In this document: in pieces, positions 17,001-55,213 of the stretch
How positions within the stretch are numbered: the stretch's first letter is position 1
How the letters are laid out: every line of letters begins with the position of its first letter
From: Paragordius varius
Taxonomy: Eukaryota; Animalia; Nematomorpha
Reading direction: 5' to 3'
Assembly: GCA_964247055.1 (NCBI GenBank)
Contig: OZ176051.1
Location: forward strand, 8,804,001-8,868,000
Length of the DNA stretch: 64,000 bases
The notes under the pieces: model-generated
What the model was told of the DNA's origin: nothing
What the model saw: only the letters and a program-made list of their open reading frames with translations
Database searches by the model: none
Made by a program: the position numbers and the translations under genes

Positions 17001-19454
17001 AACGTAAGGTTCATCACAGCCATTCTCATAACTCTAAACACAATAATGACAGTAGTAGGACAAACTCCTTCCAAAATAAAACATCAACCAAATCTAACGG
17101 AAGTGTTACGCACAATGTTATAAAACGTAATTATTCATCACGTTCGATTAACCTTAACAATAATGTTATCACTAACGAGCTATCTAAGTTGCAAAAACAA
17201 GAAGAAGTAACAACACCAGAATCAATTACACCAACTATTGAAAATTTTAATCCTTCACTAATCTTTGACGCGATTACCAATAATAAGCTAAACAACCATG
17301 AGCATTTGGTAAAAAGTAATAAGCCTGAAATAATTGATGATTGGTGCAAGGAAATAACTGGAGAAAAATTAAATCTCAATGTTAATCCCACTAAAAATAA
17401 GAATGGTAGTAATGTTGTTGTTATTCGTGATGAGAACACAACTCACAAAACAAAGAATAATGGTGAAAACAAAAATCTATCATGTCTAAATAAGGATATT
17501 CCATCTCAACAAATTTTGAATAATAATAATTATTATAATTGCAAAAACCAACGAAACCTTGATCCACCATGTTCCCTTCTTGTAAATGGCTCTGGAAATA
17601 CGATTGTTAGCGATGATTCTGATAAAACAAATACTACTACTTTAAGTTCTTCATCTAACTTATCACAGGCTACAAATAACGGAACACAACAAAACCAAAG
17701 TACATCAGATAGCTATTCGATAGAATCTAGCACCACGGATCTTAATAACTTGCCTAATAAAAATGTATCATCGCCTAACCAAAAGGGTTTAATTTCCAAT
17801 GGTACTAATATGAAAACAATTGATAATACTGTAACATTTGAACAGCCTAAAAACTATCAACCTCGTAATAATCTATTGATCCCTAAAACAACAGTAATAT
17901 CGCCTATTTTTTCATGAATATTAGTTTTTATATACATATATATATTTGCAACAAAAATTTAGTATGCAATATTTTATTGAATTTTTTTGACTTTACAACT
18001 TATAAATTCAAACACTGAGAATATTAAACTCTTTAGAAATTACTTTAATTTATTAAACTTTAAAATAATTTTAAATTATTATATTTATTCGATAGCATCA
18101 TATATATTATTTTTTCCTATCACACTATTACGTGTTGTTTGTGGATTATTACAATTCATTCACAATTGCCTTTTTTTGATTACTCACCTCTTTTTTCTTT
18201 CTTTTAACTTTTTATATTTGTAAAGGTTTGAAAATACCTGCCACTATACTATAAACTCGGAAGTAATATAGTTTATGAAATAAATAATTTAGGTCATTCC
18301 ACTTCTTCTTTGGCTTACATACCATGGTTGCAATTTTTTTATCAATAATATACTTATTTTGAATAAAATTCAATATTTCGAAAACAGGTTAACATTAACA
18401 TTAGATTTATGAAATCGTCTCTTTTCTCCTTTTTAGGATAGGATTTTAATCTCATAATTGAATTTTTTACCATTAACAAGTTTTGATGCAATTATGTTAA
18501 AAAAGTTTTTATAAAATCTGTCTAGGTCAATGTGTAATTTGTGGTCATGAAATATATGATAATTATGGTTTCTACATATACATTATTTTCTGACGCTTTT
18601 TATTGTTAAAATAATTTAATTGTTTTATATTTAAATCAATTTTAAAAATCTGATATATTTTATATTTTGTTGTAAATCTAGTTTAATTTTGTGAACACCG
18701 TAAAAACACTCTATATTTCGGATTTTTGAAATTAAAAATAGGACTGATAAAACATTTAACAAATGTTAAAGTTTATAGCCTTTAACCGTTTTAGGGCTAT
18801 TTCTGTGAATGACCCTAATTTTGAAAAGTTGAGATGATAGATTCAATAAATGTATTCTGGGATGACTTATTCACATCCGCATATGATTCGTATACTAAAT
18901 ATTTATTTAAATTGATAAATATTGATTTACGAGTCAGGGTTGGATTAGTTTGAAATTAATTACTTAAAGTTAAGAATGCCTTGCACTATGTATAGCGAAG
19001 ACACTTGCAGTAAAAATTGATATTACAGACAAAACGTAAAAACAAGACAAATATATTTTGCCAAAGACAACCATACCTTTTAAAAACCTAAACTTTCCTC
19101 TTATTATTTAATTACATTTTATACATATATAATTGATTGTATTACCAATTTGCAATTTAATACTTTGCAGTTATAAACAATGAGTGTTATATTTTAAAAA
19201 TCAAGTTAAAAAAGTTGGCGGTCTTTTAGAAAAAGCCTTTGTCTTTTAGTTTTTTAATTTTCACTCTGTATAATTTCTTTTCTGTGTATTTAACTAACTA
19301 CCCATTTTGAGGCAAAATTGAATAAATCCTTATACTATCCGTATATAAATGATTAAAATTAAAGACAGTTTTGGATATATTAGCATCAAACTTTATAAAT
19401 GATAAATAATTTTTTTTAAAACATATATTTAATGGTCAAACATATTTTCAGCAG

Positions 19455-31500: not shown

Positions 31501-34500
31501 AGAGCACGTCGACTGTTAGCTGGTCTCGATTATTTTCCTTACGATACGCTACATGCCTTTAATAAACCCGTTTTTAATGCATCCGCTACTGAGTAAGTTT
31601 TAGAGATTTATAGTTTTAATGCGTTTTCGTAGGATTTTGGAATATTTAAAACGAAATACATGCTTTTATCAAACCCATTTTTTATGCCTTTGAGTAAGTA
31701 TTTTGTGTGTTTTTAGGATTTTGACAAACTTTTTAATTAAAACATTTTTTAAATCAAAATTTTAACGAACGATACGCTATACATGCCTTAAATAATTCTG
31801 TTTTTGAATGCCTCCACTTCTGAGTAAGTTTTTATTTTTTTAAAAAATTTTTATAGAGGGTTTGTAATAAATTAGTTATACAAAATAAATTAAAACTTCA
31901 TTGGAAGTCAAAAATAATTTCATAAAGTCACCTTTACATTAACCTGTTTCTTTCTAACCTAAATGAGGTTTTTGCAATGTTAAACGATGTTGATCTGTCC
32001 TCTTTAAAAGGAAAATTTGTCCTTTAATTTTCATGGTTTTGTTAATTTAATATTACTGTATTGTCAGAAATTATATGAATGATGAAATTGATAATCGGAT
32101 GCATGGTACCCTAACCACTCCTTCCACCATTGGTTTGATACCAAGTTTAAACAGGTATTTTGCTAATAATTATATAGTAGAATATATTTCCATATTAAAA
32201 AAAAGAAATAAATTAAAACGTTTTAAAAAATATTAATATTGTATATTTTTAAATTTCAAATTATTTATCTTAATTTTCATTGTGATAAAATAAATAATAT
32301 TAAATATTATTTACACTTATTATATAGCATTATGTCTTTTTCGATTCAGGTATATACAATCGTCAAAAAAATTTTTTTACAAAAATATAATTTTATGACG
32401 TTAGTCGACGTGAATGCCCCCACTTTACCTCACCATTTGCATCATTTATTTAACCTATTAATTTAATATAATATCATATACTATATAACAATATTCCTTA
32501 AAACTAAACGACTTTAATATAAATATATTTTGGTCATTGGGTTTTTTAACCTTTTTACACATCTAATCTTGAAATTATATAAGCTTTGTTGATGTTTTGA
32601 ATAAATCATTCCTGTTATAACCAGTAGCTAACTTATTATTTTTCTAAATAATAGTTAATGTGTTTATATTTAAGTTCGCCAAATCAATATATATATATAT
32701 ATATATATCTAAATTTTAAATGGTTATTTTTTTTATTTTAAGGGTAAGACGGAAAGAAAAATATCGGAACAAAAGCGTTAAATTTAAAGGGCAAAGTCCG
32801 CCCAAACGTATTACATCACATTCTACTCAGGGTATAAATAACATTCATGAATTGCTTGATAATTCGTACGAGGATAATCGTTTCCAAAACGCTAATAAGG
32901 TAAAAATACTTATTTATTACCATTTTATTTGGGCTACCGCGTAACCTTTTAAAATAGCCCGATGAATAATTTTATTTATTTTTTCTTAATAGAATCTGTA
33001 GGAATATATTAAAATCGGAGATATACGAAAATAGTAAAGAAATGCCATTTTTATTTAAGACTACTAAATTATTTATTCTAAATTCTCTCTACTACCTATA
33101 TGATTGCGGTTGCTAAATATAAAATAAGGGTGTTACCTGTTTACTTGTCAACTCCTTTCGACAGCCCTAATATAGTTTATATAAAAGATTAGAAATGGTT
33201 GTATGTTTTTTTTTAATAAATGACATTATACTTTTTCCCCTATATATTTCTAGTTTATATCCTATCATTAGTTTCTTATCCGTTTTTTTCGATATCATAG
33301 CATGATAATAACGAAACAAATTCGTATACAACCAAAAAATCCCAAAATACTATTCATGATAACAGTGATAAAAGGGAATCCGATACTAATACACCAATCG
33401 TCAATGGGCACAAAAGTGGGAAATATATCAAGAAAAAAATTAGTTTAAATGCCATATCAGCTTCAACGCATCATTTAAATAGCTTATTATTTGGTGGAGG
33501 TGGTAGAACAAGTGTAGACACACATGGTAAAAAGAAATTTTCATTCACCAAAAATCGAGATTACATCCTTAACAATGATACTGATGTTAATGATACAAGC
33601 CTGCGAAACGAATACATAAACGGATGTGAAATGGTTGATGGACCTGAAAGTATACTTAAACAATTTATATAGTCCTCATCATATGGCTTAATAACCGACC
33701 CTTTTTTAAACAAAATAAAATTGATTTTTTTCAGTTTCAGTTTTTTTCGATATATATAATATATATACATATATATATATATATATTAGGGCATTATGTC
33801 GGCTTCAATATTTTCACCAACTTTTTATTAACTTTAAACGAAAGTATGTTAAAAAAGTGCATAATGATCAACTATTTAAAAGTTTTACAAGCTATTTATT
33901 TTATAGCTTCTTTAGAGAGGGATCAATATATGAAATTTACGGTTTATGTAATGATAAACAATTACAATTCTTTTTGGGAATATAAGTGTTTATATAATAT
34001 ATATATATATATAAAGAAAGTCAATACTGTTTTTGTTTCTGAGCTTAAGTCAATTGTTTGTCGAATGGTTTTAAAATATTAACAGTATTTTTTATATTTA
34101 TTAAAGTAATAAACATTATCAAATGAATAAAATTTCTTTTATTGACTTAAGTTTTTTGGAACCGTAGTCGAGATTAGAAATTATTTTTAAACCGTTTTTA
34201 AATAATGTTTGATGAATTTGCTAATCGCTGGATAAAAATATTTTTTATATCTTAATATAGAACAAGCCTCAAACACCGTTAGTGATAGTGAACAAAGTTT
34301 AAACAGTAACAATTAAACATTCATATTTATATATATAATTAATTATTATATTTATAAAAAATGTTAATTAAATAGAATTAACTGACTCTCTACCTTGTTC
34401 ACAAAACGGTGGATATTTTGGGAAAGCATCGCTTAATGATATAAGTAGTCTTGGGACAAACAATAGTTTTACTATGCCTTACCAACCTGTACATCTTGTG

Positions 34501-37327
34501 CCTAGTAATTAACACGATATTCATAAAAATTTTGGTCGAATTTTTTTCATATACAAACAATAACGTAAAAAATTTCGATAAATGAGTTAATTGTTTTCTA
34601 TAACGGAATATAACGTTAACATTTGTTAGAAAAAACGATTATATATTCCGTTAATAACCATATTACAATGCGCATTGATTTATTTAACAAAAAGATTCCT
34701 GCTTATTTATTTATATTTCGAAAAAATTCTTAAGCTGATTATAAACTATGATAACCAATGTTTTAGTTCAAATTTAAGTTTTCTTGAAATGACTAATATA
34801 TTTATAAATAAAACCATATTTTTTAACTCTTTTTTAATATACCCATAGATTTGGGTTGCATAATAAGTAATAAAATAGTATATTGAGACAGTCAATTATA
34901 TATTTCAAAATTGCAATTACTGTGGTTACAATAATCACTGGATAATTATTATTTTACGTTTTTTCTTTTTTAATTTTTACTCAATCATACATTATTAACT
35001 AATTTATTTTGTTTAACGTGATTTAGTTGATTACAAACGTCCAATCATTATTTTGGGTCCTTTCAAAGATCGCATCTCCGATCAGTTAATTCAAGATTTC
35101 CCTGAAACATTTAGCAATTGTGTCCCACGTAAGATATTAAACCTTCAAGGCGTTAATATATAAAGTTAAATTTGTTTTTAAGTAAATACCTGTAATTTTA
35201 TGAATTTATAACAGTAAAATCTAATTTGTATGCCCAATGAGAGAGTATGGGGGTTTGAGTATCTTGAACTTTTAAAAAACTCATCAAAATTTTAAGGCTT
35301 ATACCAAAAAAATTTGTTTTTTACATTTTGTCCTTTTAAATTATTAAAAATATAATTTATGAAGACACAACTCGTGCCCCTAGACCAGGTGAGGTCGATG
35401 GCCAAGATTACCATTTCGTAGCGGGTGGGATAACTCACATGGAATGTTTGATTAAACAAGGCCTTTTCATAGAAGCCGGTCAGTTCAATGGAAATTTGTA
35501 TGGAACATCGCTGGAGGCAGTGAGAGATGTTGCATTTATACAGGTTACTTTTTTTTAAACGTTATTATATTTTAATTTATAATTTAATGATTTATTGTGT
35601 TTAAAGATTTGTACATGGGCAAATGTAGAACAATTGATTTTGTTTTTTAAATGTTTCGATACCATCATTAAATTAGTAAAAATTTAAGAAGTTGCAAAAT
35701 TAAACTATTCAAAAGTTTGTTTATGCCATTTATATTTTAGCTATCATTCCGTAAAGAAATAATTATAATGGCAAACGTTTGGTCATACTAATCAAATATT
35801 TAACCATTATTTATTACTCTTGCACAAATTATTTTGAACCAATAGATTAGATTTACATCTTACTATTTAATTTATAAAATCAATTTTTGTAATTAACAAC
35901 GGCTTTAAACTAAATAATCTTGTGACTTGTAGTTTTAAGTTAAGATCATTAAAATCGACACAAAGGGACTACTTTTTTACATTTTATTTTACATGAATCG
36001 ATAATAAAAAAAATTAACACAATTATAATTAGGTAAAAAGGCGTAAATTTTTAATTAAAAAATAATAATTTTTTTTATATACAATTTACTTCAAATTCAC
36101 CCTTAAACAATTCAAATCTTGAACAATTCAAATATCATTCAACAATAATTCACCCTTAAACAATTCAAATTCACCCTAAAATAAATTAGGTGTTTTTTAA
36201 GATTAAAATTATATAATTTTAAAAAAATGAAATTTTGTTTGCCATTAAATTATACTGAAAAAATAATAAACTAAGCCATAAATATATATTTCATATTAAA
36301 ATGAGTTATAATAGCCTCGGAAAACACTTTATTAATTTTAAGGGTGAATTTGAATTGTTCGAGGGTGAAGTTGAATTTGGGTGAAGTTGAATCGTAAATG
36401 GTATATAACTTATTTTGAATTGGATAAATAGGAAAAACATTGTTTATTGGATGTGAGTGGGAACGCTATTCGACGCCTAGTAGCCAACGATATTTTTCCA
36501 ATCGTGATTGGTATAAGGCCCCTATCCCACGAATCTTTAATGTATGTAACTTACTTTTTTTACGTCTAAATTTTTAAAATTGAAAGGGATATAGTAGGGT
36601 TTAAATAGGTCTTTCCAGAAAAAATTGCATTATATGTATGATGGATTCTCACCACAGATCAAAAATTTATTATTTGAAAGCGTGAAGAAAAAATTTTACA
36701 TTTCATTATCGAAAAAAACCATAAAACTTTGCAAACATTATGTATTATTTTCAAATTATACCGCACTAACTAAAATTAGTTTTAATAAAAAACTTAGACA
36801 AGTAACTAATTAAATATTATGCAGGGAACTCGATCAAGAAATGGATGAAATGGAAGCCCAGCATACGTTGGAAAAGGCCGAAAAATGTCTCATCGAATTC
36901 GAACAATATTTTAACTGTAATATTTTATTTAATTATTGTAACTTTATTGTTTTTTGAGAAGAAAATGCGTATTTGGGATTTTGATTATATGTTAAAAAAC
37001 TGTTATGATGCATAAACTACGGCCCACATATAATGTGATATTAACATGATGATATTAAAAATAAATAAAAAAAATTGTATAAATATCGATAAAAAATTAT
37101 TGTTTTCGACTATTAAATATCATCCATATACTCTTGGGCCGTGAATTTTTTTCCGTAACTAAATTAATGGCTAAAAATTGTAAAAACATATAATTTTTTT
37201 ATACTTCGAAACTTTTTTAGGTGTTATACCAGCAGATACCCATGCTCAAATGTACAGAGATGTATGTGAATGTATTAGCAAAAATAGTGAACTTAAGATT
37301 TGGCAAGAATCCAGGGAACCATTATAA
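14095..37327 (+). CDS. dlg1: Discs large homolog (MAGUK: L27, PDZ1-3, SH3, HOOK, GK). Exons: 14095-14107, 14164-14289, 14352-14920, 16490-~17830, 19671-19988, 20303-20538, 21221-21323, 21623-21689, 21827-21963, 22702-23051, 23197-23283, 23899-24023, 24377-24458, 25861-25985, 26445-26533, 27039-27141, 29172-29345, 29419-29490, 29923-30094, 31386-31592, 32068-32154, 32743-32899, 33301-33649, 34261-34305, 34376-34504, 35027-35128, 35365-35543, 36432-36541, 36825-36916, 37221-37327
   Basis: The exon chain stays in frame across GT-AG introns. Motifs: [120 protein letters not shown]-terminus IWQESREPL*. Donors of the two long low-complexity exons (14920 vs 14860; 17830 vs 17893) are uncertain. Confidence 0.95.
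19457..19500. repeat. (TA)n microsatellite (others near 15906, 27980, 32690, 33770, 41780, 41970, 50075)
   Basis: Perfect TA dinucleotide run. Confidence 0.9.
25403..25423. repeat. Poly-G run in a Dlg intron
   Basis: About 20 consecutive G, within a degenerate hAT-like segment ending GTTGGACAGCACTG near 25674. Confidence 0.8.
30395..30580. mobile_element. Hairpin MITE remnant related to the palindrome centre at 5760/8590
   Basis: TACAGTATGCATTTAAATGGTAGCTTATTTACACT mirrors AGTGTGAAATAAGCAACATCAAAAGGAATACTGTA. The centre AGTGTATGGAAAAAA...TTTATCCATACACT resembles 8530-8590. Confidence 0.5.
36080..36403. mobile_element. TA-flanked MITE with TAC(C)ATTT termini and internal AATTCAAATTCACCC repeats
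   Basis: TA|TACAATTTACTTCAAATTCACCC ... GGGTGAAGTTGAATCGTAAATGGTA|TA. Confidence 0.65.
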
Positions 37328-37832: not shown

Positions 37833-40800
37833 TTATACCACCAAGAATTCAAAATATTTTATATTATAAATGGGGTATGGGCAAAATTCCATACCAAGAC
37901 TTCCACCATAAATTTCGGATACATTTTTATTTGCTTTTAACGGTTTTGAGGTCTCATTTTTTGTGGCATTTTCTTTGGATAACGTTAGCATTAAATGTAT
38001 TTCTTCATCAATATCCGGTTCCTCCCAAGGCTTTTTGGGCTGCCCAATTTTTTGGGCATAAAAATTGTCCTCAATAAATTCTAACATTTCTGCCTCCCGA
38101 AAATGCCGATTGTGATAATCTAAAACCTCCTGTTGATGTTGAATATATATGTATAAAACTCTATTCATTTTCAGTATAGGGAAATGGTGAATGAGGTTAT
38201 ATTTCCAACAATTTTTTACGGTAAAAATTAATTATGAAATAAAATATGAAAATTAAACGACTAAACTACCTTGATTTTTTCATTAAATTTTATCGTGCGA
38301 AATAAGGTATAGAGATGTAAATTTATACCTGACAATTATATAATTAAATGTAATAATAGAGGTAGTGCAGAACAAAAAAATCAAAACATTTTCTCCATAA
38401 AAAGTTATAGACTTTTCCTTTCTATGTTTTTGCTTTATAATTTTGATAATCAAAATATTTATAAATCATAGATTCATATATTAAATACCTGTCGCGGTAC
38501 GAAATGCGTTTGATTAACTTGACCCGTTGAAAGATAATACTTTTTATTGTTAATCATATCCGTGTTAAAGGGATCAAGTACAAAATAGCATGCTACCATT
38601 TGTGCAGCCATTTTAAGGGCCCCTACTTTGTAATACGAATATTGCAAATAATGATAATGGCTCCGCAAATAATCATCCATAAAAAGTATGCGACTTTCCT
38701 TGGGCAGATTAGATTCATTTTCCAATATAGATGAGGAGGAGTCTTTTTGATGGTCACTAAAATATTCTCCTTTTTCTGTTTTTTGATCTGCTACTACATT
38801 ATCATGTGAATCAGGTAATTGTTCCCCAGGGATGGTATTTAACTGTTTAATACATTGGCGATTACATTTGAGTCGTAGGGCATATAAATCTAAGTATACA
38901 GTAAGAATTAAAATTATCTTAAGAAAAAATATTTTTATTAAGCAAACATATTGTATATAATTTTTAATTTTAATATTATAGTGGTTTTGGGGTTGCAAAT
39001 AAGAAATAGAAATACAAAAAGCTAGTACGGCATAAAAACAGAATTAAGTAAAAAAAACTAAATTATTCTATACTTTTTGTATAATTAATATATATATATT
39101 ACATGTGTTGGCCAATTTATATAACTATAAACCAAAAATGAGAACTTACTGTTATATATTTATTAAAATCCTGGGTTAATATATATTATTTGTTAAAAGA
39201 ACTATTAGTATGGAATTTGTTATTCTACGACAAAATGGAAAAGTATAAACACTATTTTTTACTAAAACAACCATACTTTTTAAATCTTAATTTATTTAAA
39301 TATAAATTTTTGTTCTAAACTCTAAAGTATAAAATAAAGATGTATATTAATAACACAATCAATTACATATTTTATGATTGTTAAATGATTTTAATAAGAT
39401 ATTAATGTTTGAAAAAGTATGGTCATCCTTAAAAAAATTTGTTTTTATATTTTTATGTTTGTGTCCGTATCATTCAATTTTAACTGTAATATGAATTTTA
39501 TTTTATCCTGATAAAATTTTAATTTCTTTACTTTTCATATAATTTAAATTGAAGAAAAGAATTATACTTGCAATCGTTGTTATGAAATCGTAATTAAAAA
39601 TGTGTTTATAAGGTCCCAGGCAATGTAATCGACACTCTTTATCACGTTGGTAATAATGGTGTAACGCTTCCTCAAAATAATCTATGGCTTCCAACCAATT
39701 TTCGGACAAATATGAGGTAAGCCCATTAAAATAAAATTCCTAGCAAAAAAACAAATTAAGTTAATATGAATAATAATAAAAACTGATCTCTGTTCTTAAA
39801 TGGTCCAAATAAGATGTTACTAAAAAATTTATATTTATTTAAAAACGTGTCATATAAAATAAAAAGTGTGTGAACTGTTTCGGACACTATAAGGGATGTC
39901 CGTCGTCAGCATTAAAAAGAATAGAAATGGATTGAATAACTGTTGTCTTTTATATATAATTTTTAAATTTATTCCATTAAAATAGAATAATTAGTTATAA
40001 ACATTAGTCACTACTGAGAAAGATTGAAACCATGTCAAATGAACAATTTATAATATTTACAACATACACCTAAGTTATAATGGAAAAAAAGGGAAAAAAA
40101 GCGAGGGATCTACAACTCTGAGTTGAAAACAAAAGAGTCCATATGAGATTAATCATCAAGAAGGACTTTCCATGTATCACACTAATCTTTTGTCCTTATT
40201 CTAAATTTTTTTCACTTGAGAATTTCTAATTCTCGCGTAAGTCTTTGATTATTATTAAAAATCTTAATGCAACCAATATTGTCAAAAGAAACGTTACGGT
40301 TTTCCTTCCAACAATGTTCTGCAATAGAGCTTTTAAAATCGCCATTTCTTAAGCTATATTTGCGTGTTTTAACTTTACTTGCGGTGCCGATATCCTAACC
40401 ATACTCGCATGTAACTTTATACGCGGTTGAATTTAATTTGGATTTATTCTTATTTTATAAAAAAGTTTTAAATTTAAACCTAATTTCAAACCCACCCCAA
40501 TGCAAATTACTTTAAAATGCGTGCAATGCGATCTGTGATATTTTATAAATACGGAAATACAAAACTCATAAGTTTAAATACGTTTTTATTATTGTAAAAT
40601 TGCCCGATAAGCGTCGTTTGCTGAGTATCCATTTTTTAAAAAGGTTTGAACAAAACCATCTGTGTTACATTTATGCGAGGCTTTCCACATCCAAACTTAT
40701 TAATAGCTCGGTTTCAGCTATGTGCATATCCTTTATATAAATCTATAAATTCAAAAGAGTTTTTTAATTCGTTCTTTAAGAAGGTTTGTAAATATTCGGC

Positions 40801-41776
40801 TAAATGTTGTGCTAAAGAATACAAGGATGAATTTTTGGTGGGAACAATTGGACGCATTAAGCCATCCGTTTAATGCGCATAAGATATCACACATACTTGG
40901 CTTAATAGGACATTGTGCAATACAAATTACATATGAACATCACTCACAAAAACGAAATTTTTTAAAAAATCAAATTTTTCGCGAGTTCAAATAAACGGAT
41001 AATATGAATAAAAACATAACAGATGGTTAGCAAACGACATTAATCAGGCAATTTTAGCATTGAACAATAATAAAAATAGAACTAAAAATGATAAGATTTT
41101 TATTTCACTTCAGCATGTAAAAAATATTAGATCGCATTGCACGCATTTAGAAGCAATTTGACATTCGGGTGGAGTTGAAACTAGGTTTATATTTAATACT
41201 TTTTTTAAATTAATCCCATATGGACTCATTTGTTTTCACCTCAAAGTTGTCAATCTCTGAGGGTTTTTTTCATTTTTTTTCCATTAATACTAACTTAAGT
41301 GTATGTTGTAAATATAATAAATTGATTGTTAATATAGTTTCGATGCCTCTCAGTGACAAATGTTTTAACTAATTGGTGGGCTGGACATATTGAAATTCTT
41401 AAAATACCAGCAAAATCCGGCCGACCGCATACCTCATGGCTCAACACAATAACAAAAGATCTCGAATCGCTTAATTTAAATCTAGAATCAGCCAGATCAA
41501 AAAAAATTGGAAAAAAAAATAAACGGGTGTACCGCTATTTAATAGCAATTCCCCATATATATGATGATGATATAAAGATAACAGTTATTTACTTATGCTT
41601 ATTTATAGTGTCATAAATCGTTTGCACCTTTTTATTTATTTATTATTTTATATGACACGGTTTAAAATAAATTTCCATATATTTTTAAAATATTCACGTG
41701 TCTACATTAAAAATTACTACAAGATATTAATTAATTGATTTTTATAGTTTCTGTATCCTTGTTAACAATTATTTTT

Positions 41777-41811
<35 letters not shown>

Positions 41812-42543
41812 GATGATATTGTGCCTCAAGATTGCGAAAACTTTTTTTGGAGTGCGGTAAGCCTTGGTACAAAACCAAATTATTTCTCATAACATCATCG
41901 TCTGGGTTGTGAAGATAAAAGGTGTAAGCATGCGATATTGCGGAATCAATATGACCTATCTGGCAAATACATATATATATATATATATATATATGTATAA
42001 TAAATTCAACCATTCATAAAAAACAAATTAATGCATAATATATATGTTCGATTATTTTTATTTGACACAAAACATTGAGGATTATCTTTTTTAATTAAAA
42101 TAAGCATATTCTAAACCTAAAATTTTTTAGGTAAAAATGTTTACTTTGAAATAACAATACTGTAAATATTCATGAATTTTGTGATTTGAAATCAAATCAT
42201 CTGTAGCTTCATGGGGTACTAATGGACGATGTAAAAATATTTGATTACGACACCGAACTAAGCACAATGTTTCATTAAGTAAACCAAAGTAAAATGTATA
42301 TTCTTCAAAAATATTATCATCCTCATATAAACACGCCGAATAACATTTCAATAAAGTATCTTTAAAATATTTGTAATCTTCTAAAGCACGACGCATAAAT
42401 GAAATACAGTGTGGCCAATTTTGATCATAATAAGATTCCACGCCTCGTTTGTATAATACATGGTAAGTTACATCGGGATAATCAATTAATGCAAAAATAC
42501 ATTGAAAAAATAATATAAGCAAAATTGTCATACCAAATAGCAT
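37833..42543 (-). CDS. CRTAP: Cartilage-associated protein / SC65 (leprecan family, no dioxygenase domain); complement join(42145..42543,41810..41959,39568..39739,38489..38889,37833..38129)
   Basis: Signal-peptide-like N-terminus. Leprecan motifs YKRGVESYYDQNW..MRRAL, CxxxC pairs, YLQYCYFK, AYTFYLHNPDDDVMRNNL, NWLEAIDYFEEAL, HYHYLQYSYYK, FVPRQEVLDY. All intron phases are consistent. CRTAP versus P3H4/SC65 orthology is unresolved. Confidence 0.85.
40170..40440 (-). pseudogene. Penelope-like retroelement GIY-YIG endonuclease fragment
   Basis: Minus translation AYKVTCEYG*DIGT...KSSIAEHCWKENRNVSFDNI resembles the PLE VYxIxC..YIGxT...SAxAEH motifs. Confidence 0.65.
40670..40880 (-). pseudogene. 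Penelope-like retroelement reverse transcriptase fragment
   Basis: Minus translation DGLMRPIVPTKNSSLYSLAQHLAEYLQTFLKNELKNSFEFID, then a frameshift to LLISLDVESL, matching the PLE RT motifs RPIV..Y.LA.YL..KNS..F and SLDVESL. Confidence 0.72.
41370..41575 (+). pseudogene. 3' fragment of an RTE-like non-LTR retrotransposon
   Basis: WAGHI...KSGRPHTSWLNTITKDL matches the WxGH..GRP..W.D...DL C-terminal motif. It is followed by a (TGA)n-like tail near 41563. Confidence 0.65.
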
Positions 42544-42607
42544 ACACTCATAATTTTAAATTTATTACTGCTAGCTTATAAGAAATTATAATAATAAAAT
42601 ATATTTG

Positions 42608-43404
42608 TTAAATTTCAATATCATCATCAAATGTTTCTTCAGGAAAATCTCCAACAATCACACATTCAGGTCTAACAAAACCTCCATATTTATTATCGCA
42701 AACAAAATATCGTTTTCCATTTACGCTATTATATTTTTAGAAAATAAACCTTCCATCATTTTTCCCCAATGGCTCATCATATTTAACTCCTACCCAAACT
42801 CCAGGCTTGAAATCAGTGTTTCCTGCAATGTTTTTAAAAAATAAACCTGTGTACATTATAGTTCCAAGTTTTGTTAGACCATTTATAATAATTTTACATC
42901 TATCACCAATGTTCATGTTTTTTAAAAGATTAATTTTATTAGAATCATTCTTATCACCGCTTATTTTGTTATAGCCCATTTCAGCTAGGAATTTCCTAGC
43001 AGAATCTAAAATATAATATAAAAATACTGGGCCTATTTGAGTATTCTTGATCTGATATTTCAAGTTTGGGAATAGCGTTTAAGTCATCATATATACCTTT
43101 TTTAATCGTATTATCAGTAACCTTATATAAAAAGTGTATAAACTTCTATATCAATATTTTCTATCGTATCGGGTATGTAATCAGCCAATGTTTTAGTAAT
43201 ATTTAAATCGTCAAACCAAATAGTACCATCTTTTTTCAATATTTTGATTTGCATATTATCTAAGGTAGCGCCTGTGATAAAAACCAATTTTTCCTGATCA
43301 AATTAATATAAAACTACTTTAAGCTGATTAATTGTCAGATTTCTTTCAACCCTTTTGTTATAAAAATTGTTAGAAAAATTGGTCCGTATATCGAGTGATA
43401 ACAT
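42608..43404 (-). CDS. TBCB: Tubulin-folding cofactor B (Ubl + CAP-Gly); complement join(43318..43404,43144..43293,43028..43121,42847..43005,42750..42822,42608..42725)
   Basis: Spliced product LTINQLK|[10 protein letters not shown]|[17 protein letters not shown]|NSARKFL..GTIMYT|[24 protein letters not shown]|[27 protein letters not shown] aligns to TBCB. This needs five GT-AG introns of 24, 22, 22, 24 and 24 nt. The start could instead be the in-frame ATG at 43431. Confidence 0.93.
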
Positions 43405-43867
43405 AAGGAGAAAAGACTGTAAAATCGTCATATGATTTCGGATAAAAATTTGTTGATAACAACCGTCCCAATAAAAATATCGTTTATACCGGGAAAACAA
43501 ATTATTTTAATCAATAATACTTAATATATGTGGACGTGATATTCGCTGATATCATCCATGTCTTTGCAAAATTTAAATCATTTATATATATTAAAATTTT
43601 TGGTTTTTAGGGTAGTTTTGTATTCACGGAGTTTTAACATTTTGTTAAATATCCATTACATTTTGGGCTGATTTTATATCCCAGAGCTTAAAGATATATT
43701 TAAATGTATTAAAGGTTGTTTTCCGAAAATTTAATTATCAACTATCTTGTCCAATTATTTATAAAAATGGTTAATATTTTCAGTTTTCTAATTCCTTGAA
43801 CAGATAGTAAACGGCTCCATCAAAATTTTTTACAGTCCGTTTAAATTTAAACAAATAACAACATTAA

Positions 43868-44100: not shown

Positions 44101-45348
44101 TTAACACTTGGATTCATCACATTCACTTTAGTCCTTCGATATAAATTGGGGTAGTTAAATACCCCAGGCCTTTTTAAAGCAAATAATTTACTAAACACCT
44201 ATTGTTTTTAAGTTCTATCGCTTATTTTATATTTATTAATGCCTAATCAACTAAATACAACAGGATATTTACATTTTAATTCAAGTCACAACATGCTTCA
44301 GACAATCGATTTACAAATATCTATTATTTATGTTTAGCATCGCCATAACAGAGAGAAAATATCTTTAAAAGTAAGTTTTTGCAATTTATAGGCTTATAAA
44401 GACATATACTTGAATAACCTTATGTAAGATATTGGACAGTTATTGAATTCCGAGACGCAACTATAAAATTAGTCTTATAAATTTTGTAAAGAGATGTGCT
44501 TAAGCTGAAAACATACCACCTACTTTCTGAAGTAAATTTTACATTTAAGTTTACTAAAAAATAGAATTAATATCATGAAAGAAACAGAATCATATACACC
44601 AAGATGGTTTTGTCAACAGGTCATCAAAATTTATATAAATTATGATCTCCCAGAATTACAGAATAATGTTTTATTTAATGCTTTATATCTAATTATGTAT
44701 CTTTTTTATTCTTTGATATCAAATAAATTAAGCATTTTATTTTTTAGAAGTATGTTTATTATTCAGGTCAGTTAAACTCAAACCCCAGCCCGGGCATCTT
44801 ATTTCAATGCTATAAATTATTATATTATTTTTGTGTTTGTTTAAAAAATAATGCAATCTTTCTTAATTCTAAACCTTTCCATAAAATTTATGTGGTTTTG
44901 CTCATATTTTGATAATCAGATTAATCAAAATTGGTGAAAATTGCTATGTTATTCAAATTATGTAATATTTATCGGCATTATATTGTCATCGGTAAAATAT
45001 ATATTCGGCTAGTTGGTGAGTATTGAAGATTATACGATGGATAATCACATTCCGATTAACTGGATCAGTTATATATGTTTATGAAATTTAATCTCCACAC
45101 ATTTTATTTAAATTATTTTCATAGTTTATGCAAACAATTCAACAGCTAGCTCAACATTAGTAAACTTATCTCATAAAAGAATTATGGAGATAACAAATAC
45201 AAGAGACTTTCCTTTTGAAACAACCTTTTCAATAAACATATTTTAAGTCATGAATGTTGACTATGTGCTCAAGTTCAGAAAAAAATGATAATAAAAGTTA
45301 TTTGAATACTCATTTATTAACGTTTTATATAATATACAATATAAAAAT

Positions 45349-46891
45349 TCAGCAATTATTGCAATAAATTATTGTTTTTCTGTGGTTTTTGCACACCGCA
45401 TTTTGGCATACTTGGCAAAATATCACGGATTTTTTGTCCACAGATCTTGGACACAAATAGCACCTTGTATGACATATAAGTATGTATACCTTTTTGGCAC
45501 ATTAATATTATTCTGTTCTAAAATTCCCATCTTTTCTAAAGCCGAAAAAAATGATTTTGTTAACATTTTTTGTTTTTCTTGCAGACCCGAGGCAAGTTTT
45601 TTACTGAATTTCGTCCAAAAATAATCGTCGAGATAATTTATTCGTCCGATTATAATTGTGAATAAAATGTGGGCATTTACGCCTGCAATGTCAATAATAT
45701 TGAAAAACAGGCGTAGTGGCCATCGCTAACTGCCTCGTGATGCATACTACCTAACATGTAAACGGTTTTCTTTGGTCGCCTTATAGGCTACTAGAGTTAG
45801 ATCTTCATGAAATCCATGAACTGAGGCATAAAGATCGCTTTTTTTAAATCAAAATCACAGGGTATTTCTGGCTTGTTTGATCTCAATGTGCCTAATTAGA
45901 GATTATAAATATTTTTCATTATTAGACAAAAAATTATACCCACTAACGTCAACTGTTTATTCAATAATTCCTGTGCTAGTGGTATCGAAGTGAAGTAATT
46001 ATCAGTAGTTATGTTGTAACCACTGTGAAGGGGTTTCGTTAACTGTATAGCAACATTTTTTGCTAAGTTTTTACAAACGGATCCATCCGTCGATTTACCG
46101 GTGTATAAAACGCCATTATAACAATAACCATTTTCGGAGTCGCACAATAAAACAATTTCAAACCATACTTATCGGGTTTATTTGGATAAATTCTAAAGGA
46201 GCGATTCCCTATAATAAATAAAAAATATATACCCTTAAGACCAAGCAATTGTTCATCGATTGTTAGGTAATAACCAGGATCATATAAATTTCTTGAAGTA
46301 TAAAAAGGTTCCATATTTCAGATATCGCTGCACCTTTGACAAGATTCTAGTGTCTCTTGTTTCTTTATTATCAAAACGGAGATGTTTAAATATATTAAAA
46401 AATCTGGTGTAGGTCATGGTTGCCCCATTAAATGGATCAGATCTTTGATCGTAAAACAATTCTCTCAAAGGGACCATGTATGATTTGCGGACGCCCATAG
46501 CAATCAAGATACCTAAATATTTATATAGATAATATACCTAAAAAGGCATCAAATTCCTCCATATTCAAATAATTCCACGTGTCCGATTTGGCGTATTCAT
46601 TGGTATAGTTTATGATTAAATTTTTAATGTCATTAGTTATGATAGAATTGAATATCGTAAGGGGGTCCTGGATAATTCATTGCCCGGGATTAGGATTATG
46701 TTGGATTGCTTGATTTTAGTAGGATTTAAGTGTTTAATCCAAACAAATGATTTAGAATAAGCCAAATTTTCTATTATATTAAAATCTAAATAAATTTTTT
46801 TATACCTGAATCCGAAGATGAGGAGTCACTATCTACATCATCACTTAAAATATCTCGGCTACTATCAAAATTATCAGAAAATTCTTCCATA
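45349..46891 (-). pseudogene. piggyBac transposase pseudogene with micro-introns (copy A)
   Basis: Reverse complement of 52426-53970 with the same frameshifts; it lacks the CCA codon of the PGP motif. Confidence 0.88.
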
Positions 46892-47172
46892 ACAAAAAAA
46901 TAAATTCTTCGTATCAAAAAATACTTTAAATGATATCTTTGCAGGAAGTGGGATTGTGCAAACTTTAAAAATAAAATGTATTCTGGTAAAAAAATTCAAA
47001 AATAATTCTGGCGCCAACCAATTTGAGATGAGAATTTTTTTCAAAACTGAATTTTATTTGGATATTTTGGTTTAATTATATATTTTATATTGGGATAGAA
47101 GCATAAATTTAAATTAGGGCCATTCTATTGGGTAGTTTTTTAAGAATACCAATTTAAAAATGGTCTGAGGTA

Positions 47173-48592
47173 TACCATTTCCCAGTCTAAATAAACGTTT
47201 TCCCAGTCAATCGAAACGTTTTCCCAGTCAATCGAAACATTTTCCTAGTCAATCGAAACGTTTTCCCAATCAATCGAAACATTTTCCCAGTCAATCGAAA
47301 CGTTTTCCCAATCAATCGAAACATTTTCTCAGTTAATAAAAACATTTCCCCAATCAATAAAAACGGTTTTATTTTTGATGATAAATATCAAAACAAGATA
47401 TAAAAATAACTTTTAACCATTAGCGTAATATTGGGATATTATTTTTTTATAGAAACACAATTATTTAATGACAATTTTCCAAGTATATTCCAGTGGACAA
47501 TCATTAAGACTTATTCTTTTAAAATTATATTTTTGGAATTTGAGATGTTTTTAAGATAATATTTTTTATTTTATTTATGGTTCGCATTATTTGCGGCTAA
47601 CTAACAAAATCTATAGTTACGGATGAAATATTAAAAATAAAAATAATATACCATTTTTATCTCAAAGGTCATTTAACACTTCATATTGGATCTTAAACAA
47701 TAAATTTTACCCTAATTTTATAATATTTATCATTTGGTCATCGGGTTCCCAACGCGGCGTGCCGAGTATCTCTGTGCGGCCCACTAAAAATTTAGAAATC
47801 CATATGCAAAAATATGCCCACAAAATCTTATTAATATTCATATTTCTTACGAATTTCTCTGAATGAGGCTAGTAAATTGGTAACAAATTAAAAAAATTAC
47901 TAAATTTTTGTATTTTACAGTCTTATGTCTAATCGAAAAATTATTTATGAAATATATCGAATGCGGAACACCGTGCTTTTTGAGTAATGTGGCCCGCGAA
48001 GCCATTCGGTTGGACACCTCTGTTTTAGTCAAATATCTTATTAAATATTTTTAAATTTAGATATTTTTTCCGACAGTATTTTTATGGAAAAACTTGACAT
48101 TGTAAAAACTGTTTTGAAGCGTTCGGCAAATATTAATGCGAACCATCAATAAAATAAAAAAATCTTAAAAACATCTCAAATTACAAAAGATATAACTTTT
48201 AAAGAATAAATCATTAATGATTGTCCACAGGAATATACTTGAAAAATTGTCATTCAATAATTGTTTTTTCATGAAAAATAATATCCTAATATTACCCTGA
48301 TAATTGTTAAAAGTTAATTTTATGTCTTGTTTTAATATTTATCATCAAAAATAAAACGGTTTTTATTGACTGGGAAAACGTTTTTATTGATTGGGAAAAT
48401 GTTTTTATTGACTGGGAAAATGTTTCGATTGACTGGGAAAACGTTTTGATTGACTGGGAAAATGTTTCGATTGACTGGGAAAACGTTTCGATTGACTGGG
48501 AAAATGTTTCGATTGACTGGGAAAACGTTTCGATTGATTGGGAAAATGTTTCGATTGACTGGGAAAACGTTTATTTAGACTGGGAAATGGTA
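47173..48592. mobile_element. Foldback-type MITE (TA TSD, Tc1/mariner-like target) with ~420-bp arms containing 21-bp tandem repeats
   Basis: GG TA|TACCATTTCCCAG ... CTGGGAAATGGTA|TA TTTAG. The empty site GGGGTATTTAG in copy B shows a TA duplication. Repeat unit is CCCAGTCAATCGAAACGTTTT. Confidence 0.85.
47739..48022. mobile_element. hAT-like MITE in the loop of the foldback element (second copy reversed at ~49228-49505)
   Basis: Ends (C)GGGTTCCCAAC ... GTTGGACACCTCTG, with a GCGGCCC subterminal motif, like the hAT at 5812. Confidence 0.55.
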
Positions 48593-48744
48593 TATTTAGA
48601 TACCCCAATTTGAATCGAAGTGTTAATGTGACCAGATATTTTGAACTTTGACGCAGTACAAAATTAAAACATACTTTGCCTGTTTTTACACCATCGGTGT
48701 AGTTTATTACACAGTTTCCACAAAAAATATCCTGATGAAATATA

Positions 48745-50076
48745 AACCATTTCCCAGTCTAAATAAACGTTTTCCCAGTCAATCGAAACATTTTTCCAAT
48801 CAATCGAAACGTTTTCCCAGTCAATCGAAATGTTTTCCCAGTCAATAAAAACATTTCCCCAATCAATAAAAACGTTTTCCCAGTCAATAAAAACGGTTTT
48901 ATTTTTGATGCTAAATATCAAAACAAGAATATAAAAACAACTTTTAACCATTATTAGCGTAATATATGGAGATAATTTTTAATTAAAAACACAATTATTG
49001 AATGACAATTTTTTCAAGTATATTTTAGTGCACAACCATTAATGACTTATTCTTTGAATGTTATATTTTTGGAATTTGAGTTAAGATAATATTTTTTATT
49101 TTATAGATGGTTCCCATTAATATTTGCGGAACGCTTCACAATAGTTCTTAAATATGTCCGGTTTGTCGATAAAAATACTGTTGGAAAAAATATCAATATT
49201 TAATAAAAAGGATATTTGACTAAAAACAAGGGTATCCAACTGAATGCTTCGCGGGCCGCATTTTTAACTCAAAAAGCACACGGTTCCCCATACGGGTATT
49301 CACATATTTTTTCGATTAATAAGACTGTAAAATACAAACACAATATAACAAATTTTTTTAATTCATTACCAATTTAATAGATTCATTCATAATAATTGCG
49401 TAAGAAATATGAATATTACTAAGATTTTGGGGCATATTTTTGCATATGGTTTTCCAATTTTTTTGCTGCCCGCACAAAGATACTCGCCGCCTTAGGCTCC
49501 CAACCAAATTTTAAATATTATAAAATTAGTGTAAAATTTATGTTTAAGATCCAATATAAAGTGTTAAATGACCTTTGTGATAAAAATAGTATATTTTTGT
49601 AAATTTTATTAATTCCTCCGTAACTATAGATTCTTTAGATTAGCCGCATATATTAATGCGAACCATCGATAAAATAAAAACTCAAATTCCAAAAATATAA
49701 AATTTAAAGTATAAATCAATGATTGTGCACTGGTATATACTTGGAAAAATTGTCATACAATAATTGTGTTTTTAATTAAAAATAATATCCTAATGTTACG
49801 CTAATAATGGTTAAAAGTTATTTTTATATTCTTGTTTTGATATTTATCATCAAAAATAAAACCGTTTTTATTGACTGGGAAAAAGTTTTTATTGATTGGG
49901 AAAATGTTTTTATTGACTGGGAAAATGTTTCGATTGACTGGGAAAACGTTTCGATTGACTGGGAAAATGTTTCGATTGACTGGGAAAACGTTTCGATTGA
50001 CTGGGAAAACGTTTCGATTGATTGGGAAAATGTTTCGATTGACTGGGAAAACGTTTATTTAGACTGGGAAATGGTA
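48745..50076. mobile_element. Second copy of the 21-bp-repeat foldback MITE, loop in opposite orientation
   Basis: TA|AACCATTTCCCAG ... CTGGGAAATGGTA|(TA)n, with the same arms and 21-bp arrays as 47173-48592. Confidence 0.82.
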
Positions 50077-50521
50077 TATATATATATATATATATATATA
50101 TTTTTTCTGATAGGAAAATATTAGGATTATCATGGTGCTTTTGGTTTTTTTAAGAAAGTTATTTACCATTTTGAGGTATAATATGGCAAAAGGTGCTAAA
50201 TTTTTTCAAATATATTTGTTGGTTAAAGCTAAATGCTTTATTTCAAAAAATATCACTAAAATATAACATAAACTACAGATAAAAGCACAACAATATTTTT
50301 AAAAAATTTAAATTTTTAAATGTAAGCTCTGAAAGTCCCAAAATTTTTGGCATTTTTCAAATGGGCGTCTCTTTTGAAACAAACGCAAAAATTCCGTTGT
50401 GCATAATTTTAAATATATGCTAAATTTTGATATCAACTATATATTTTTTTTTAAAAATGCATACTTTCAAAAATTTAATTTTTAGGAAAATTTTGTTGAA
50501 GCATACTTCATACTATCTTAA

Positions 50522-52111: not shown

Positions 52112-52425
52112 TTAACACTTCGATTCAAATTGGGGTATCTAAATACCCCAGACCATTTTTAAATTGGTATTCTTAAAAAACTACCCAATAGAATGGCCCT
52201 AATTTAAGTTTATGCTTCTATCCCAATATAAAATATATAATTAAACCAAAATATCCAAATAAAATTCAGTTTTGAAAAAAATTCTCATCTCGAATTGGTT
52301 GGCGCCAGAATTATTTTTGAATTTTTTTACCAGAATACATCTTATTTTTAAAGTTTGCACAATCCCACTTCCTGCAAAGATATCATTTAAAGTATTTTTT
52401 GATACGAAGAATTTATTTTTTTGTT

Positions 52426-53970
52426 ATGGAAGAATTTTCTGATAATTTTGATAGTAGCCGAGATATTTTAAGTGATGATGTAGATAGTGACTCCTCATCT
52501 TCGGATTCAGGTATAAAAAAATTTATTTAGATTTTAATATAATAGAAAATTTGGCTTATTCTAAATCATTTGTTTGGATTAATCACTTAAATCCTACTAA
52601 AATCAAGCAATCCAACATAATCCTAATCCCGGGCCCAAATCAATTATCCATGACCCCCTTACGATATTCAATTCTATCATAACTAATGACATTAAAAATT
52701 TAATCATAAACTATACCAATGAATACGCCAAATCGGACACGTGGAATTATTTGAATATGGAGGAATTTGATGCCTTTTTAGGTATATTATCTATATAAAT
52801 ATTTAGGTATCTTGATTGCTATGGGCGTCCGCAAATCATACATGGTCCCTTTGAGAGAATTGTTTTACGATCAAAGATCTGATCCATTTAATGGGGCAAC
52901 CATGACCTACACCAGATTTTTTAATATATTTAAACATCTCCGTTTTGATAATAAAGAAACAAGAGACACTAGAATCTTGTCAAAGGTGCAGCGATATCTG
53001 AAATATGGAACCTTTTTATACTTCAAGAAATTTATATGATCCTGGTTATTACCTAACAATCGATGAACAATTGCTTGGTCTTAAGGGTATATATTTTTTA
53101 TTTATTATAGGGAATCGCTCCTTTAGAATTTATCCAAATAAACCCGATAAGTATGGTTTGAAATTGTTTTATTGTGCGACTCCGAAAATGGTTATTGTTA
53201 TAATGGCGTTTTATACACCGGTAAATCGACGGATGGATCCGTTTGTAAAAACTTAGCAAAAAATGTTGCTATACAGTTAACGAAACCCCTTCACAGTGGT
53301 TACAACATAACTACTGATAATTACTTCACTTCGATACCACTAGCACAGGAATTATTGAATAAACAGTTGACGTTAGTGGGTATAATTTTTTGTCTAATAA
53401 TGAAAAATATTTATAATCTCTAATTAGGCACATTGAGATCAAACAAGCCAGAAATACCCTGTGATTTTGATTTAAAAAAAGCGATCTTTATGCCTCAGTT
53501 CATGGATTTCATGAAGATCTAACTCTAGTAGCCTATAAGGCGACCAAAGAAAACCGTTTACATGTTAGGTAGTATGCATCACGAGGCAGTTAGCGATGGC
53601 CACTACGCCTGTTTTTCAATATTATTGACATTGCAGGCGTAAATGCCCACATTTTATTCACAATTATAATCGGACGAATAAATTATCTCGACGATTATTT
53701 TTGGACGAAATTCAGTAAAAAACTTGCCTCGGGTCTGCAAGAAAAACAAAAAATGTTAACAAAATCATTTTTTTCGGCTTTAGAAAAGATGGGAATTTTA
53801 GAACAGAATAATATTAATGTGCCAAAAAGGTATACATACTTATATGTCATACAAGGTGCTATTTGTGTCCAAGATCTGTGGACAAAAAATCCGTGATATT
53901 TTGCCAAGTATGCCAAAATGCGGTGTGCAAAAACCACAGAAAAACAATAATTTATTGCAATAATTGCTGA
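52426..53970 (+). pseudogene. piggyBac transposase pseudogene with five micro-introns (copy B)
   Basis: Motifs IPGP, EEFDAFLG|ILIAMG, RFFNIFKHLRFD, YLTIDEQLLGLKG|NRSF, NKPDKYGLK, ITTDNYFTS, LVG|TLRSNKPEIP, FFNIIDIAGVNA, and Cys-rich tail PKR|CYLCP..CQVCQNAVCKNH..CNNC*. It has several frameshifts and appears to lack the YN..GVD third-Asp region. Confidence 0.9.
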
Positions 53971-55213
53971 ATTTTTATATTGTATATTATATAAAACGTT
54001 AATAAATGAGTATTCAAATAACTTTTATTATCATTTTTTTCTGAACTTGAGCACATAGTCAACATTCATGACTTAAAATATGTTTATTGAAAAGGTTGTT
54101 TCAAAAGGAAAGTCTCTTGTATTTGTTTTCTCCATAATTCTTTTATGAGATAAGTTTACTAATGTTGAGCTAGCTGTTGAATTGTTTGCATAAACTATGA
54201 AAATAATTTAAATAAAATGTGTGGAGATTAAATTTCATAAACATATATAACTGATCCAGTTAATCGGAATCGGTTGTGATTATCCATCGTATAATCTTCA
54301 ATACTCACCAACTAGCCGAATATATATTTTACCGATGACAATATAATGCCCATAAATATTACATAATTTGAATAACATAGCAATTTTCACCAATTTTGAT
54401 TAATCTGATTATCAAAATATTAGCAAAACCACATAAATTTTATGGAAAGGTTTAGAATTAAGAAAGATTGCATTATTTTTTAAACAAACACAAAAATAAT
54501 ATAATAATTTATAGCATTGAAATAAGATGCCCGGGCTGGGGTTTGAGTTTAACTGACCTGAATAATAAACATACTTCTAAAAAATAAAATGCTTAATTTA
54601 TTTGATGATCAATAAAAAAGATACATAATTAGATATAAAGCATTAAATAAAACATTATTCTGTAATTCTGGGAGATCATAATTTATATAAATTTTGATGA
54701 CCTGTTGACAAAACCATCTTGGTGTATATGATTCTGTTTCTTTCATGATATTAATTCTATTTTTTAGTAAACCTAAATGTAAAATTTACTTCAGAAAGTA
54801 GGTGGAATGTTTTCAGCTTAAGCACATCTCTTTACAAAATTTATAAGACTAATTTTATAGTTGCGTCTCGGAATTCAATAACTGTCCAATATTTTAAATA
54901 AGGTTATTCAAGTATATGTCTTTATAAGCCTATAAATTGCAAAAACTTACTTTTAAAGATATTTTCTCTCTGTTATGGCGATGCTAAACATAAATAATAG
55001 ATATTTGTAAATCGATTGTCTGAAGCATGTTGTGACTTGAATTAAAATGTAAATATCCTGTTGTATTTAGTTGATTAGGCATTAATAAATATAAAATAAG
55101 CGATAGAACTTAAAAACAATAGGTGTTTAGTAAATTATTTGCTTTAAAAAGGCCTGGGGTATCCAACTACCCCAATTTATATCGAAGGACTAAAGTGAAT
55201 GTGATGAATCCAA

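Follow-up and report, generated by a model that had tools for sequence, protein, structure and literature searches.

Candidate Ultra-Short Introns at Ancestral Positions in the TBCB Gene of the Horsehair Worm Paragordius varius

Introns of less than 30 nt in animals have long been regarded as annotation errors, and a minimum intron length of 30–40 nt is a common default in gene finders and spliced aligners. The gene for TBCB, a conserved tubulin chaperone, in Paragordius varius raises the question of how such a view applies to a gene from which five segments of only 22–24 nt have to be removed before its protein can be read. Are these segments spliceosomal introns that have become very short, how would they be recognised, and is their small size a property of this gene or of the genome in which it resides? 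The gene is located in a window of 64,000 nt (by which we mean the whole stretch of DNA that was analysed), which is eukaryotic and AT-rich (about 20–34% GC).

Gene model and identity of TBCB

Reading of the sequence, together with exon-wise translation, yields a complete TBCB gene of 235 codons, which is comprised of six exons on the minus strand (43431–42608). When the five segments are cut out a reading frame of 708 nt is obtained, ending in a TAA stop codon at 42610–42608. The lengths of the exons are 114 nt (87 nt if counted from a second ATG), 150, 94, 159, 73, and 118 nt, the last including the stop. The parts of the gene, in the order of transcription, are as follows:

43318–43431, minus strand: exon 1, 38 codons; residues 11–38 align to residues 12–39 of the TBCB from Ptychodera
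43294–43317, minus strand: putative intron 1, 24 nt, GT..AG, phase 0; in-frame TAA if retained
43144–43293, minus strand: exon 2, 50 codons; ubiquitin-like domain (Ubiquitin_2)
43122–43143, minus strand: putative intron 2, 22 nt, GT..AG, phase 0
43028–43121, minus strand: exon 3, 94 nt
43006–43027, minus strand: putative intron 3, 22 nt, GT..AG, phase 1
42847–43005, minus strand: exon 4; linker and start of the CAP-Gly domain
42823–42846, minus strand: putative intron 4, 24 nt, GT..AG, phase 1; without in-frame stop
42750–42822, minus strand: exon 5, 73 nt; GKNDG motif; CAP_GLY profile positions 21–42 (E = 7e-8)
42726–42749, minus strand: putative intron 5, 24 nt, GT..AG, phase 2; in-frame TAA if retained
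42608–42725, minus strand: exon 6; CAP_GLY profile positions 44–64; aligns to Ptychodera residues 212–249, reaching the C-terminus

A preliminary description of this DNA had placed five introns of these lengths at these coordinates, and this placement is borne out, as all of the segments begin with GT and end with AG and their removal is needed for the TBCB frame. Exon 1 contains a second in-frame ATG at 43404; the start at 43431 is favoured over it because the N-terminal length then matches that of the Ptychodera TBCB.

The assignment of this gene to TBCB, which had likewise been proposed, is supported by several lines of evidence. The domain order, viz. an N-terminal ubiquitin-like domain, a C-terminal CAP-Gly domain bearing the GKNDG motif, and an acidic tail, is that of TBCB, and the protein is colinear with residues 12–249 of the Ptychodera TBCB. 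In six-frame profile searches of the genome the locus scored 62.5 bits with CAP_GLY and 24.9 bits with Ubiquitin_2; the first of these matches reads through one TAA, which is located in intron 5, and the second also through one TAA, which is located in intron 1. The best PDB matches to the different pieces of the protein are the TBCB chains 1tov, 1whg, and 1lpl. All comparisons were made exon by exon, except that intron 4, which is a multiple of three in length (3n) and free of stop codons, allowed exon 4, intron 4 and exon 5 to be used as a single query. For this piece the top PDB matches were the CAP-Gly domains of the C. elegans protein F53F4.3 and of mouse TBCB, and the only gap relative to both of these structures corresponds to the 8 residues that are encoded by intron 4. 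The junction between exons 5 and 6 is similarly defined: in the Pfam CAP_GLY profile position 42 is the last to be covered by exon 5 and position 44 the first to be covered by exon 6, and in 1lpl_A exon 5 stops at chain residue 59 and exon 6 picks up at 61–62, the gap in both cases being one split codon. In the PDB chains of TBCB exon 6 aligns from the directly following residue through to the C-terminal tail. No significant Pfam or PDB match was obtained for exon 2 alone or exon 4 alone, as the conservation of TBCB is poor in these regions.

The N-terminal half of the gene model was examined with the aid of a sequence from a mite. A word search with the 84-residue piece encoded by exon 4, intron 4 and exon 5 gave one candidate, which led to the oribatid-mite-like metagenome contig ERZ25067825:ctg179510_3x_l in ENA. 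The TBCB in this contig is intronless and has been gene-called as two overlapping frames (1030–1068), a split that is most likely due to a one-base error at 3x coverage. In this protein exon 2 corresponds to residues 40–87, with its last residue at 88, and exon 3 to residues 89–119, and residues 32–38 line up by eye with the end of exon 1; the alignment is contiguous across introns 1–3. A further word search, which was seeded with the N-terminal half of the mite protein, led to annotated full-length TBCB sequences.

The gene is present in a single copy. In the genome (110.6 Mb) the ubiquitin-like exon 2 matches nothing but itself, CAP-Gly domains were found at only four loci by the six-frame profile search, and the remaining Ubiquitin_2 matches are polyubiquitin arrays. 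An intact TBCB elsewhere, which according to the preliminary description would, together with retention of the segments in transcripts, have turned this locus into a pseudogene, was searched for in the genome and none was found.

Intron positions in other TBCB genes

To what extent the five segments correspond to introns in other species was examined using four annotated TBCB loci, for which the exon–intron structures were set by an exact match of the spliced translation to the annotated protein. The structures of these genes are as follows (position as amino acid residue, with the phase in parentheses, and intron lengths):

Ptychodera flava (hemichordate): 5 introns at residues 39 (0), 87 (0), 118 (1), 186 (1), and 210 (2); 191–2071 nt
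Glandiceps talaboti (hemichordate): 5 introns at the same five positions and phases as in Ptychodera; 424–943 nt
Euwallacea similis (beetle): 3 introns at residues 40 (0), 130 (1), and 202 (2); 55–99 nt
Oppia nitens (mite): no introns in TBCB

When the exons of the P. varius gene are placed upon the Ptychodera protein, exon 1 reaches up to residue 39, exon 3 extends from residue 88 to residue 118 plus 1 nt, exon 4 ends at residue 186 plus 1 nt, exon 5 ends at residue 210 plus 2 nt, and exon 6 covers residues 212–249. The position and the phase (0, 0, 1, 1, 2) of all five tiny introns thus match those in both hemichordates, and exons 3 and 5 are of the same length (94 and 73 nt) in the hemichordate genes. 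With Euwallacea similis two of the five positions are held in common, those of introns 1 and 5, the latter corresponding to the third intron of the beetle. The middle intron of the beetle gene (residue 130, phase 1) was also considered as a counterpart of intron 3 and rejected, the offset between them being about 5–12 residues in a poorly aligned linker.

The agreement of every junction with a Ptychodera intron in both position and phase, as seen in these alignments, points to a common origin and cannot be due to chance. Because the codon and phase are identical to those of the hemichordate introns, the five tiny introns appear to be ancient spliceosomal introns that have shrunk. The hemichordate genes, which are alike in domain order and in all five positions and phases, differ from the gene described here in that their introns measure 191–2071 nt (Ptychodera) or 424–943 nt (Glandiceps) as compared to 22–24 nt, and those of the beetle TBCB, at 55–99 nt, are also longer. 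The introns of TBCB would thus have been cut about 10- to 90-fold in length without a shift in position by even one base. All five segments show the features of U2-type introns, viz. GT–AG termini, a frame colinear with the orthologues after their removal, and positions and phases in common with those of orthologues. Upon comparison with the U12-type donor (ATATCC or GTATCC; branch site TCCTTAAC), no fit was seen among the five TBCB donors.

Splicing machinery, intron architecture and competing explanations

The preliminary description had suggested a survey of the U2, U2AF, and SF1 components, and this survey revealed one canonical set of them. At least 35 gene copies for U2 snRNA score above threshold, many of them on contig C3 (0.26–0.53 Mb), with the canonical GUAGUA branch-binding box. 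About 14 copies of U1 were detected, mostly on contig C6 (0.58–0.63 Mb), many of which are degenerate; their 5' end carries ACUUAC. The genome also contains one SF1 locus (SF1-HH) and a series of exons for a U2AF65-like protein (U2AF_lg). The genome search for the U12 snRNA was blank, and as its control was also silent this result is uninformative. As the spliceosomal gene set is single and canonical, both the tiny and the long introns must be handled by one spliceosome, in agreement with the earlier suggestion that a single spliceosome deals with both extremes of size. The snRNA genes are grouped in large clusters, and U1 reads AUACUUACUUGG, in which position 9 has changed from C to U and would be able to pair with either A or G at exon position −1.

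The five introns consist of 79–91% A+T and 46–64% T, with T-rich positions 3–11. At 22–24 nt they belong among ultra-short animal introns (<30 nt), with donors beginning GTA or GTT followed by a T-rich stretch, and acceptors that have only the AG in common. The donors are GTTTAT in three of the introns, and GTAGTT and GTATTT in one each, and their pairing with U1 extends little beyond G+1, U+2 and U+6. In all five introns A residues are present at +12 to +16, with the AG located 6–11 nt further on. Introns 1 and 5 contain motifs resembling TAAT or CTAA; at 33% A and with five to seven introns, neither these motifs nor the A residues at +12 to +16 can be told apart from what base composition would give. 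The statement in the preliminary description that such introns leave no room for a normal branch point plus a polypyrimidine tract was overstated with regard to the branch point, in view of the T content of each intron and the A residues at +12 to +16, whereas room for a separate pyrimidine tract is indeed absent.

These features suggest a manner in which the introns could be spliced. The ordinary major spliceosome would recognise them across the intron, by means of a weak 5' site consisting of GT plus A or T, and of a first half that is rich in T. The branch point would be provided by at least one A at about +12 to +16, with the AG lying 6–11 nt downstream and no separate polypyrimidine tract being involved. 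A length of 22–24 nt is probably close to the shortest that the host spliceosome accepts. Intron 4, whose 24 nt would add 8 codons, could be retained in some of the transcripts.

Other explanations for the five segments may now be considered. If the gene were a decaying pseudogene, or if the assembly were faulty, the segments would be insertions or errors, and four of the five do disrupt the frame if kept. However, random insertions are not expected to be GT..AG five times, each time at the codon and phase of a hemichordate intron; the conserved motifs are still present in the exons, the stop codon is intact, and the genome is without a second copy of TBCB. We regard this explanation as extremely improbable. 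Another possibility is that the segments are removed or skipped without a spliceosome, by somatic DNA elimination of the ciliate type or by ribosomal bypassing, and in its favour the internal eliminated sequences (IESs) of ciliates and mitochondrial bypass elements are in a similar range of lengths. Against this, the segments end in GT..AG and not in TA..TA, they are placed at ancestral positions of spliceosomal introns, and the canonical snRNA and SF1/U2AF set in the genome speaks against removal by other means. Furthermore, for the 20–27-nt introns of myxozoan animals RNA splicing has been shown by long reads (PMC13644364, Mol Biol Evol, 2026). Removal without a spliceosome is hence scarcely to be credited.

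A different question is whether the stop codons within these introns are maintained by selection, so that unspliced mRNA is degraded by NMD, as in Paramecium, where tiny introns show a deficit of 3n lengths and a signature of stop codons. It had been noted earlier that two of the three 3n introns contain an in-frame stop, and that this is the pattern expected from NMD surveillance. The count itself holds, an in-frame TAA being present in introns 1 and 5 (24 nt each), but the signature does not: in composition-preserving shuffles a stop occurred in 54–73% of cases per intron, and the probability of two or more stops in three introns is P = 0.69, i.e., the number observed matches chance. Moreover, intron 4 is free of stops, and 3n lengths are seen in three of the five cases, with no visible deficit of them. 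Selection of this kind is accordingly an unlikely cause of the stops; TBCB does not display the Paramecium-type pattern, and five introns are far too few to speak for the genome as a whole. The interpretation that we prefer, with a high degree of confidence and on the basis of sequence comparisons, is that the segments are five U2-type GT–AG spliceosomal introns of a functional, single-copy TBCB gene, which would be ancestral to bilaterians and would have shrunk in place to about 22–24 nt.

Distribution of tiny introns and comparison with known systems

To what extent tiny introns are confined to TBCB can be examined in the genes around it. The relevant features of the window are as follows:

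20303–37324, plus strand: Dlg-like MAGUK gene with PDZ, SH3, and guanylate-kinase exons; partial model
37836–42543, minus strand: CRTAP/leprecan-like gene; TPR_leprecan profile pieces 3–119, 108–170, 171–214, and 250–307; PDB matches to P3H1/CRTAP
52782–52806, plus strand: intron in a piggyBac copy, 25 nt, GT..AG, phase 1; 9 kb from TBCB

The introns of the CRTAP-like gene measure 185 nt (42144–41960), about 2 kb (with transposon-like ORFs inside), about 650 nt, and about 300 nt. In the Dlg-like gene the spacing of exons ranges from 180 nt to several kb (180–900 nt or more in the part encoding SH3 and guanylate kinase), which implies that its predicted introns are longer than 100 nt. The earlier observation that the neighbouring genes are unlike TBCB in this regard is thus upheld, the first intron of the CRTAP-like gene being exactly 185 nt and the Dlg exons lying at least 180 nt apart. 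A PEX1-like gene at the start of the window has one intron of about 74 nt.

For genes elsewhere in the genome, intron sizes were estimated from the distances between successive HMM matches in six-frame searches. In this sample, which is small and biased against short exons, the genes for CCT chaperonins have 31 introns of 67–1263 nt and those for proteasome subunits 8 introns of 102–3321 nt. One proteasome gene that was read by eye has introns of about 66 and 79 nt. Additionally, a proteasome beta gene contains a 27-nt GTAAGT..AG intron (C1:6948961–6948987); for the next donor in this gene no tiny intron resolves, and the gene probably mixes tiny and longer introns. In TBCB, which was picked post hoc, all five introns are tiny as compared to one of the 42 introns sized in the CCT and proteasome genes. 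The introns of these sampled genes do not have a median below 30 nt, as would be the case where ultra-short introns are prevalent. The joining of ORFs across GT..AG segments of 15–100 nt in 264 kb gave 18 junctions as compared to 19–30 for decoy dinucleotides, i.e., no excess, and as the clusters obtained by this procedure are mostly repeats it provides no estimate of abundance.

The preliminary description had proposed a regime of intron lengths that is bimodal by gene. The clustering of tiny introns in TBCB (5/5 as against 1/42) supports this proposal, but the separation is not strict, in view of the 27-nt intron in the proteasome beta gene and the 25-nt intron in the piggyBac copy. It could be argued that tiny introns are scattered independently of genes, and that the five in TBCB represent a selection effect without any regime by gene. 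TBCB was indeed selected for its extreme appearance, and in the proteasome beta gene a single 27-nt intron precedes the donor mentioned above, which is not accounted for by any tiny intron. However, only one of 42 sized introns in the CCT and proteasome genes is shorter than 30 nt, all four introns of the CRTAP-like gene are at least 185 nt, and a single genome-wide frequency makes five of five in one gene very unlikely against such a background. In Henneguya a clustering of short introns has likewise been published (PMC13644364). Gene-independent scatter is therefore rather unlikely. Tiny introns look like a minority class in this genome, clustered by gene but not absolutely so. The shrinkage of introns would then have been uneven among genes, with compact ones such as TBCB having all of their introns at the floor, and with neighbouring genes keeping their introns or expanding them, often through the insertion of transposons.

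Introns of this size have been described from a few other lineages. In a survey of 51 animal genomes Dicyema japonicum and myxobolid Myxozoa were the only animals found to have introns shorter than 30 nt, and further lineages were predicted to follow (PMC13644364); Nematomorpha are not mentioned in this study. In the literature searched, which excludes Cunha et al. (2023), intron sizes were not found reported in papers on hairworm genomes. The myxobolids (Henneguya salminicola, Thelohanellus kitauei, and Myxobolus spp.) resemble P. varius in having GT–AG introns of 20–27 nt at conserved positions in the AT-rich genome of a parasite (PMC13644364). Their introns, like those of TBCB, have a 5' site of about GTa and a 3' site that is down to AG, preceded by a few A residues, together with canonical U2 and U2AF, and their short introns also cluster with short neighbours (PMC13644364). 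This reduced architecture is described for myxobolid and dicyemid introns alike, and in both the distance from the A residues to the AG grows with intron length (PMC13644364). There are also differences: ultra-short introns are the majority in myxobolids, with a median of 22–27 nt (PMC13644364), whereas in the P. varius sample they are an apparent minority and the others range from about 66 nt to 3.3 kb; the TBCB donors have T and not A at +3 in three of the five introns, unlike the myxobolid GTa, and the lineage is ecdysozoan. Dicyema japonicum is, similar to P. varius, a parasitic bilaterian in which ancestral positions have been kept and lengths have gone down to the mid-20s, but its shortening is genome-wide (PMC6736024; PMC13644364), whereas the gene adjoining TBCB has kb-sized introns bearing transposons. 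Ciliates (Paramecium, 20–30 nt; Stentor, 15–16 nt; Nyctotherus) have introns of the same size class, with an AT-rich interior and a canonical spliceosome (PMC2633312; PMC13644364); they are protists with uniform intron lengths, unlike P. varius.

The nematomorph affinity of the genome rests on one gene, an intronless PP1 gene located 10 kb beyond the window. The outstanding match is Gordionus sp. m RMFG-2023 (84% identity, with 98% of the query covered), a protein that belongs to the Gordionus montsenyensis assembly GCA_954871325.2, the other PP1 matches listed having at most 72% identity. The Gordionus locus around PP1 is without any other gene. The GC content of about 27% is close to the 26.9% of the G. 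montsenyensis assembly, whereas the P. varius assembly, at 110.6 Mb, is smaller than the 200–300 Mb of published hairworms. Judged from the gene structures described here, P. varius is a third animal lineage with putative introns below 30 nt, the new element being their coexistence with long introns that are seemingly commoner. Neither the ancestral positions nor the published ultra-short introns of two other animal lineages had been noted in the preliminary description. Whether horsehair worms represent a third independent origin in animals, with a discrete class of minimal-length introns that fills whole genes and is not the norm of the genome, is a matter on which we find the balance to be even.

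If this were the case, one spliceosome would routinely use two modes of recognition in one nucleus, and introns would collapse gene by gene, through deletion or selection that is linked to expression, chromatin or transcription. Such a genome would also provide a natural system for studying what sets the minimum length of introns. The occurrence of introns below 30 nt would be extended to an ecdysozoan parasite in whose genome long introns also abound. In practice, a minimum intron length of 30–40 nt would break or miss genes of this kind, and it could inflate the apparent loss of genes in hairworms.

A number of other observations were made in this window. The TBCB stop and the ATG of the CRTAP-like gene, which is on the same strand, are separated by 64 nt (42543–42610), and a signal-peptide-like start follows this ATG. 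With this spacing, and with an AATAAA located about 15 nt before the ATG, the 3' end of TBCB must overlap the 5' end of the CRTAP-like gene. The two genes may form an operon-like pair; a search for the nematode SL1 RNA was blank and its control was silent as well, hence this search is uninformative. In the introns of the CRTAP-like gene, long (TA)n microsatellites abut exon 2 on either side (41780–41820 and 41965–42000, minus strand). In the Dlg-like gene, some 40 extra residues interrupt the PDZ domain of the first PDZ exon (20303–20539, plus strand), after the GG..NP loop and before the strand that follows it; they could be either inserted coding sequence or a 3n intron free of stops. An open frame of 476 codons (16487–17914, plus strand), which lies upstream of the PDZ exons and is of low complexity, rich in serine and asparagine, and without a Pfam match, may be a large N-terminal exon of Dlg or a separate gene. 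Lastly, a piggyBac-type transposase is present in two inverted copies (45295–46995, minus strand, and 52321–54024, plus strand), in which the DDE_Tnp_1_7 pieces lie in shifting frames, and minisatellite arrays are located between these copies at about 47169–47413, 48310–48978, and 49786–50150.
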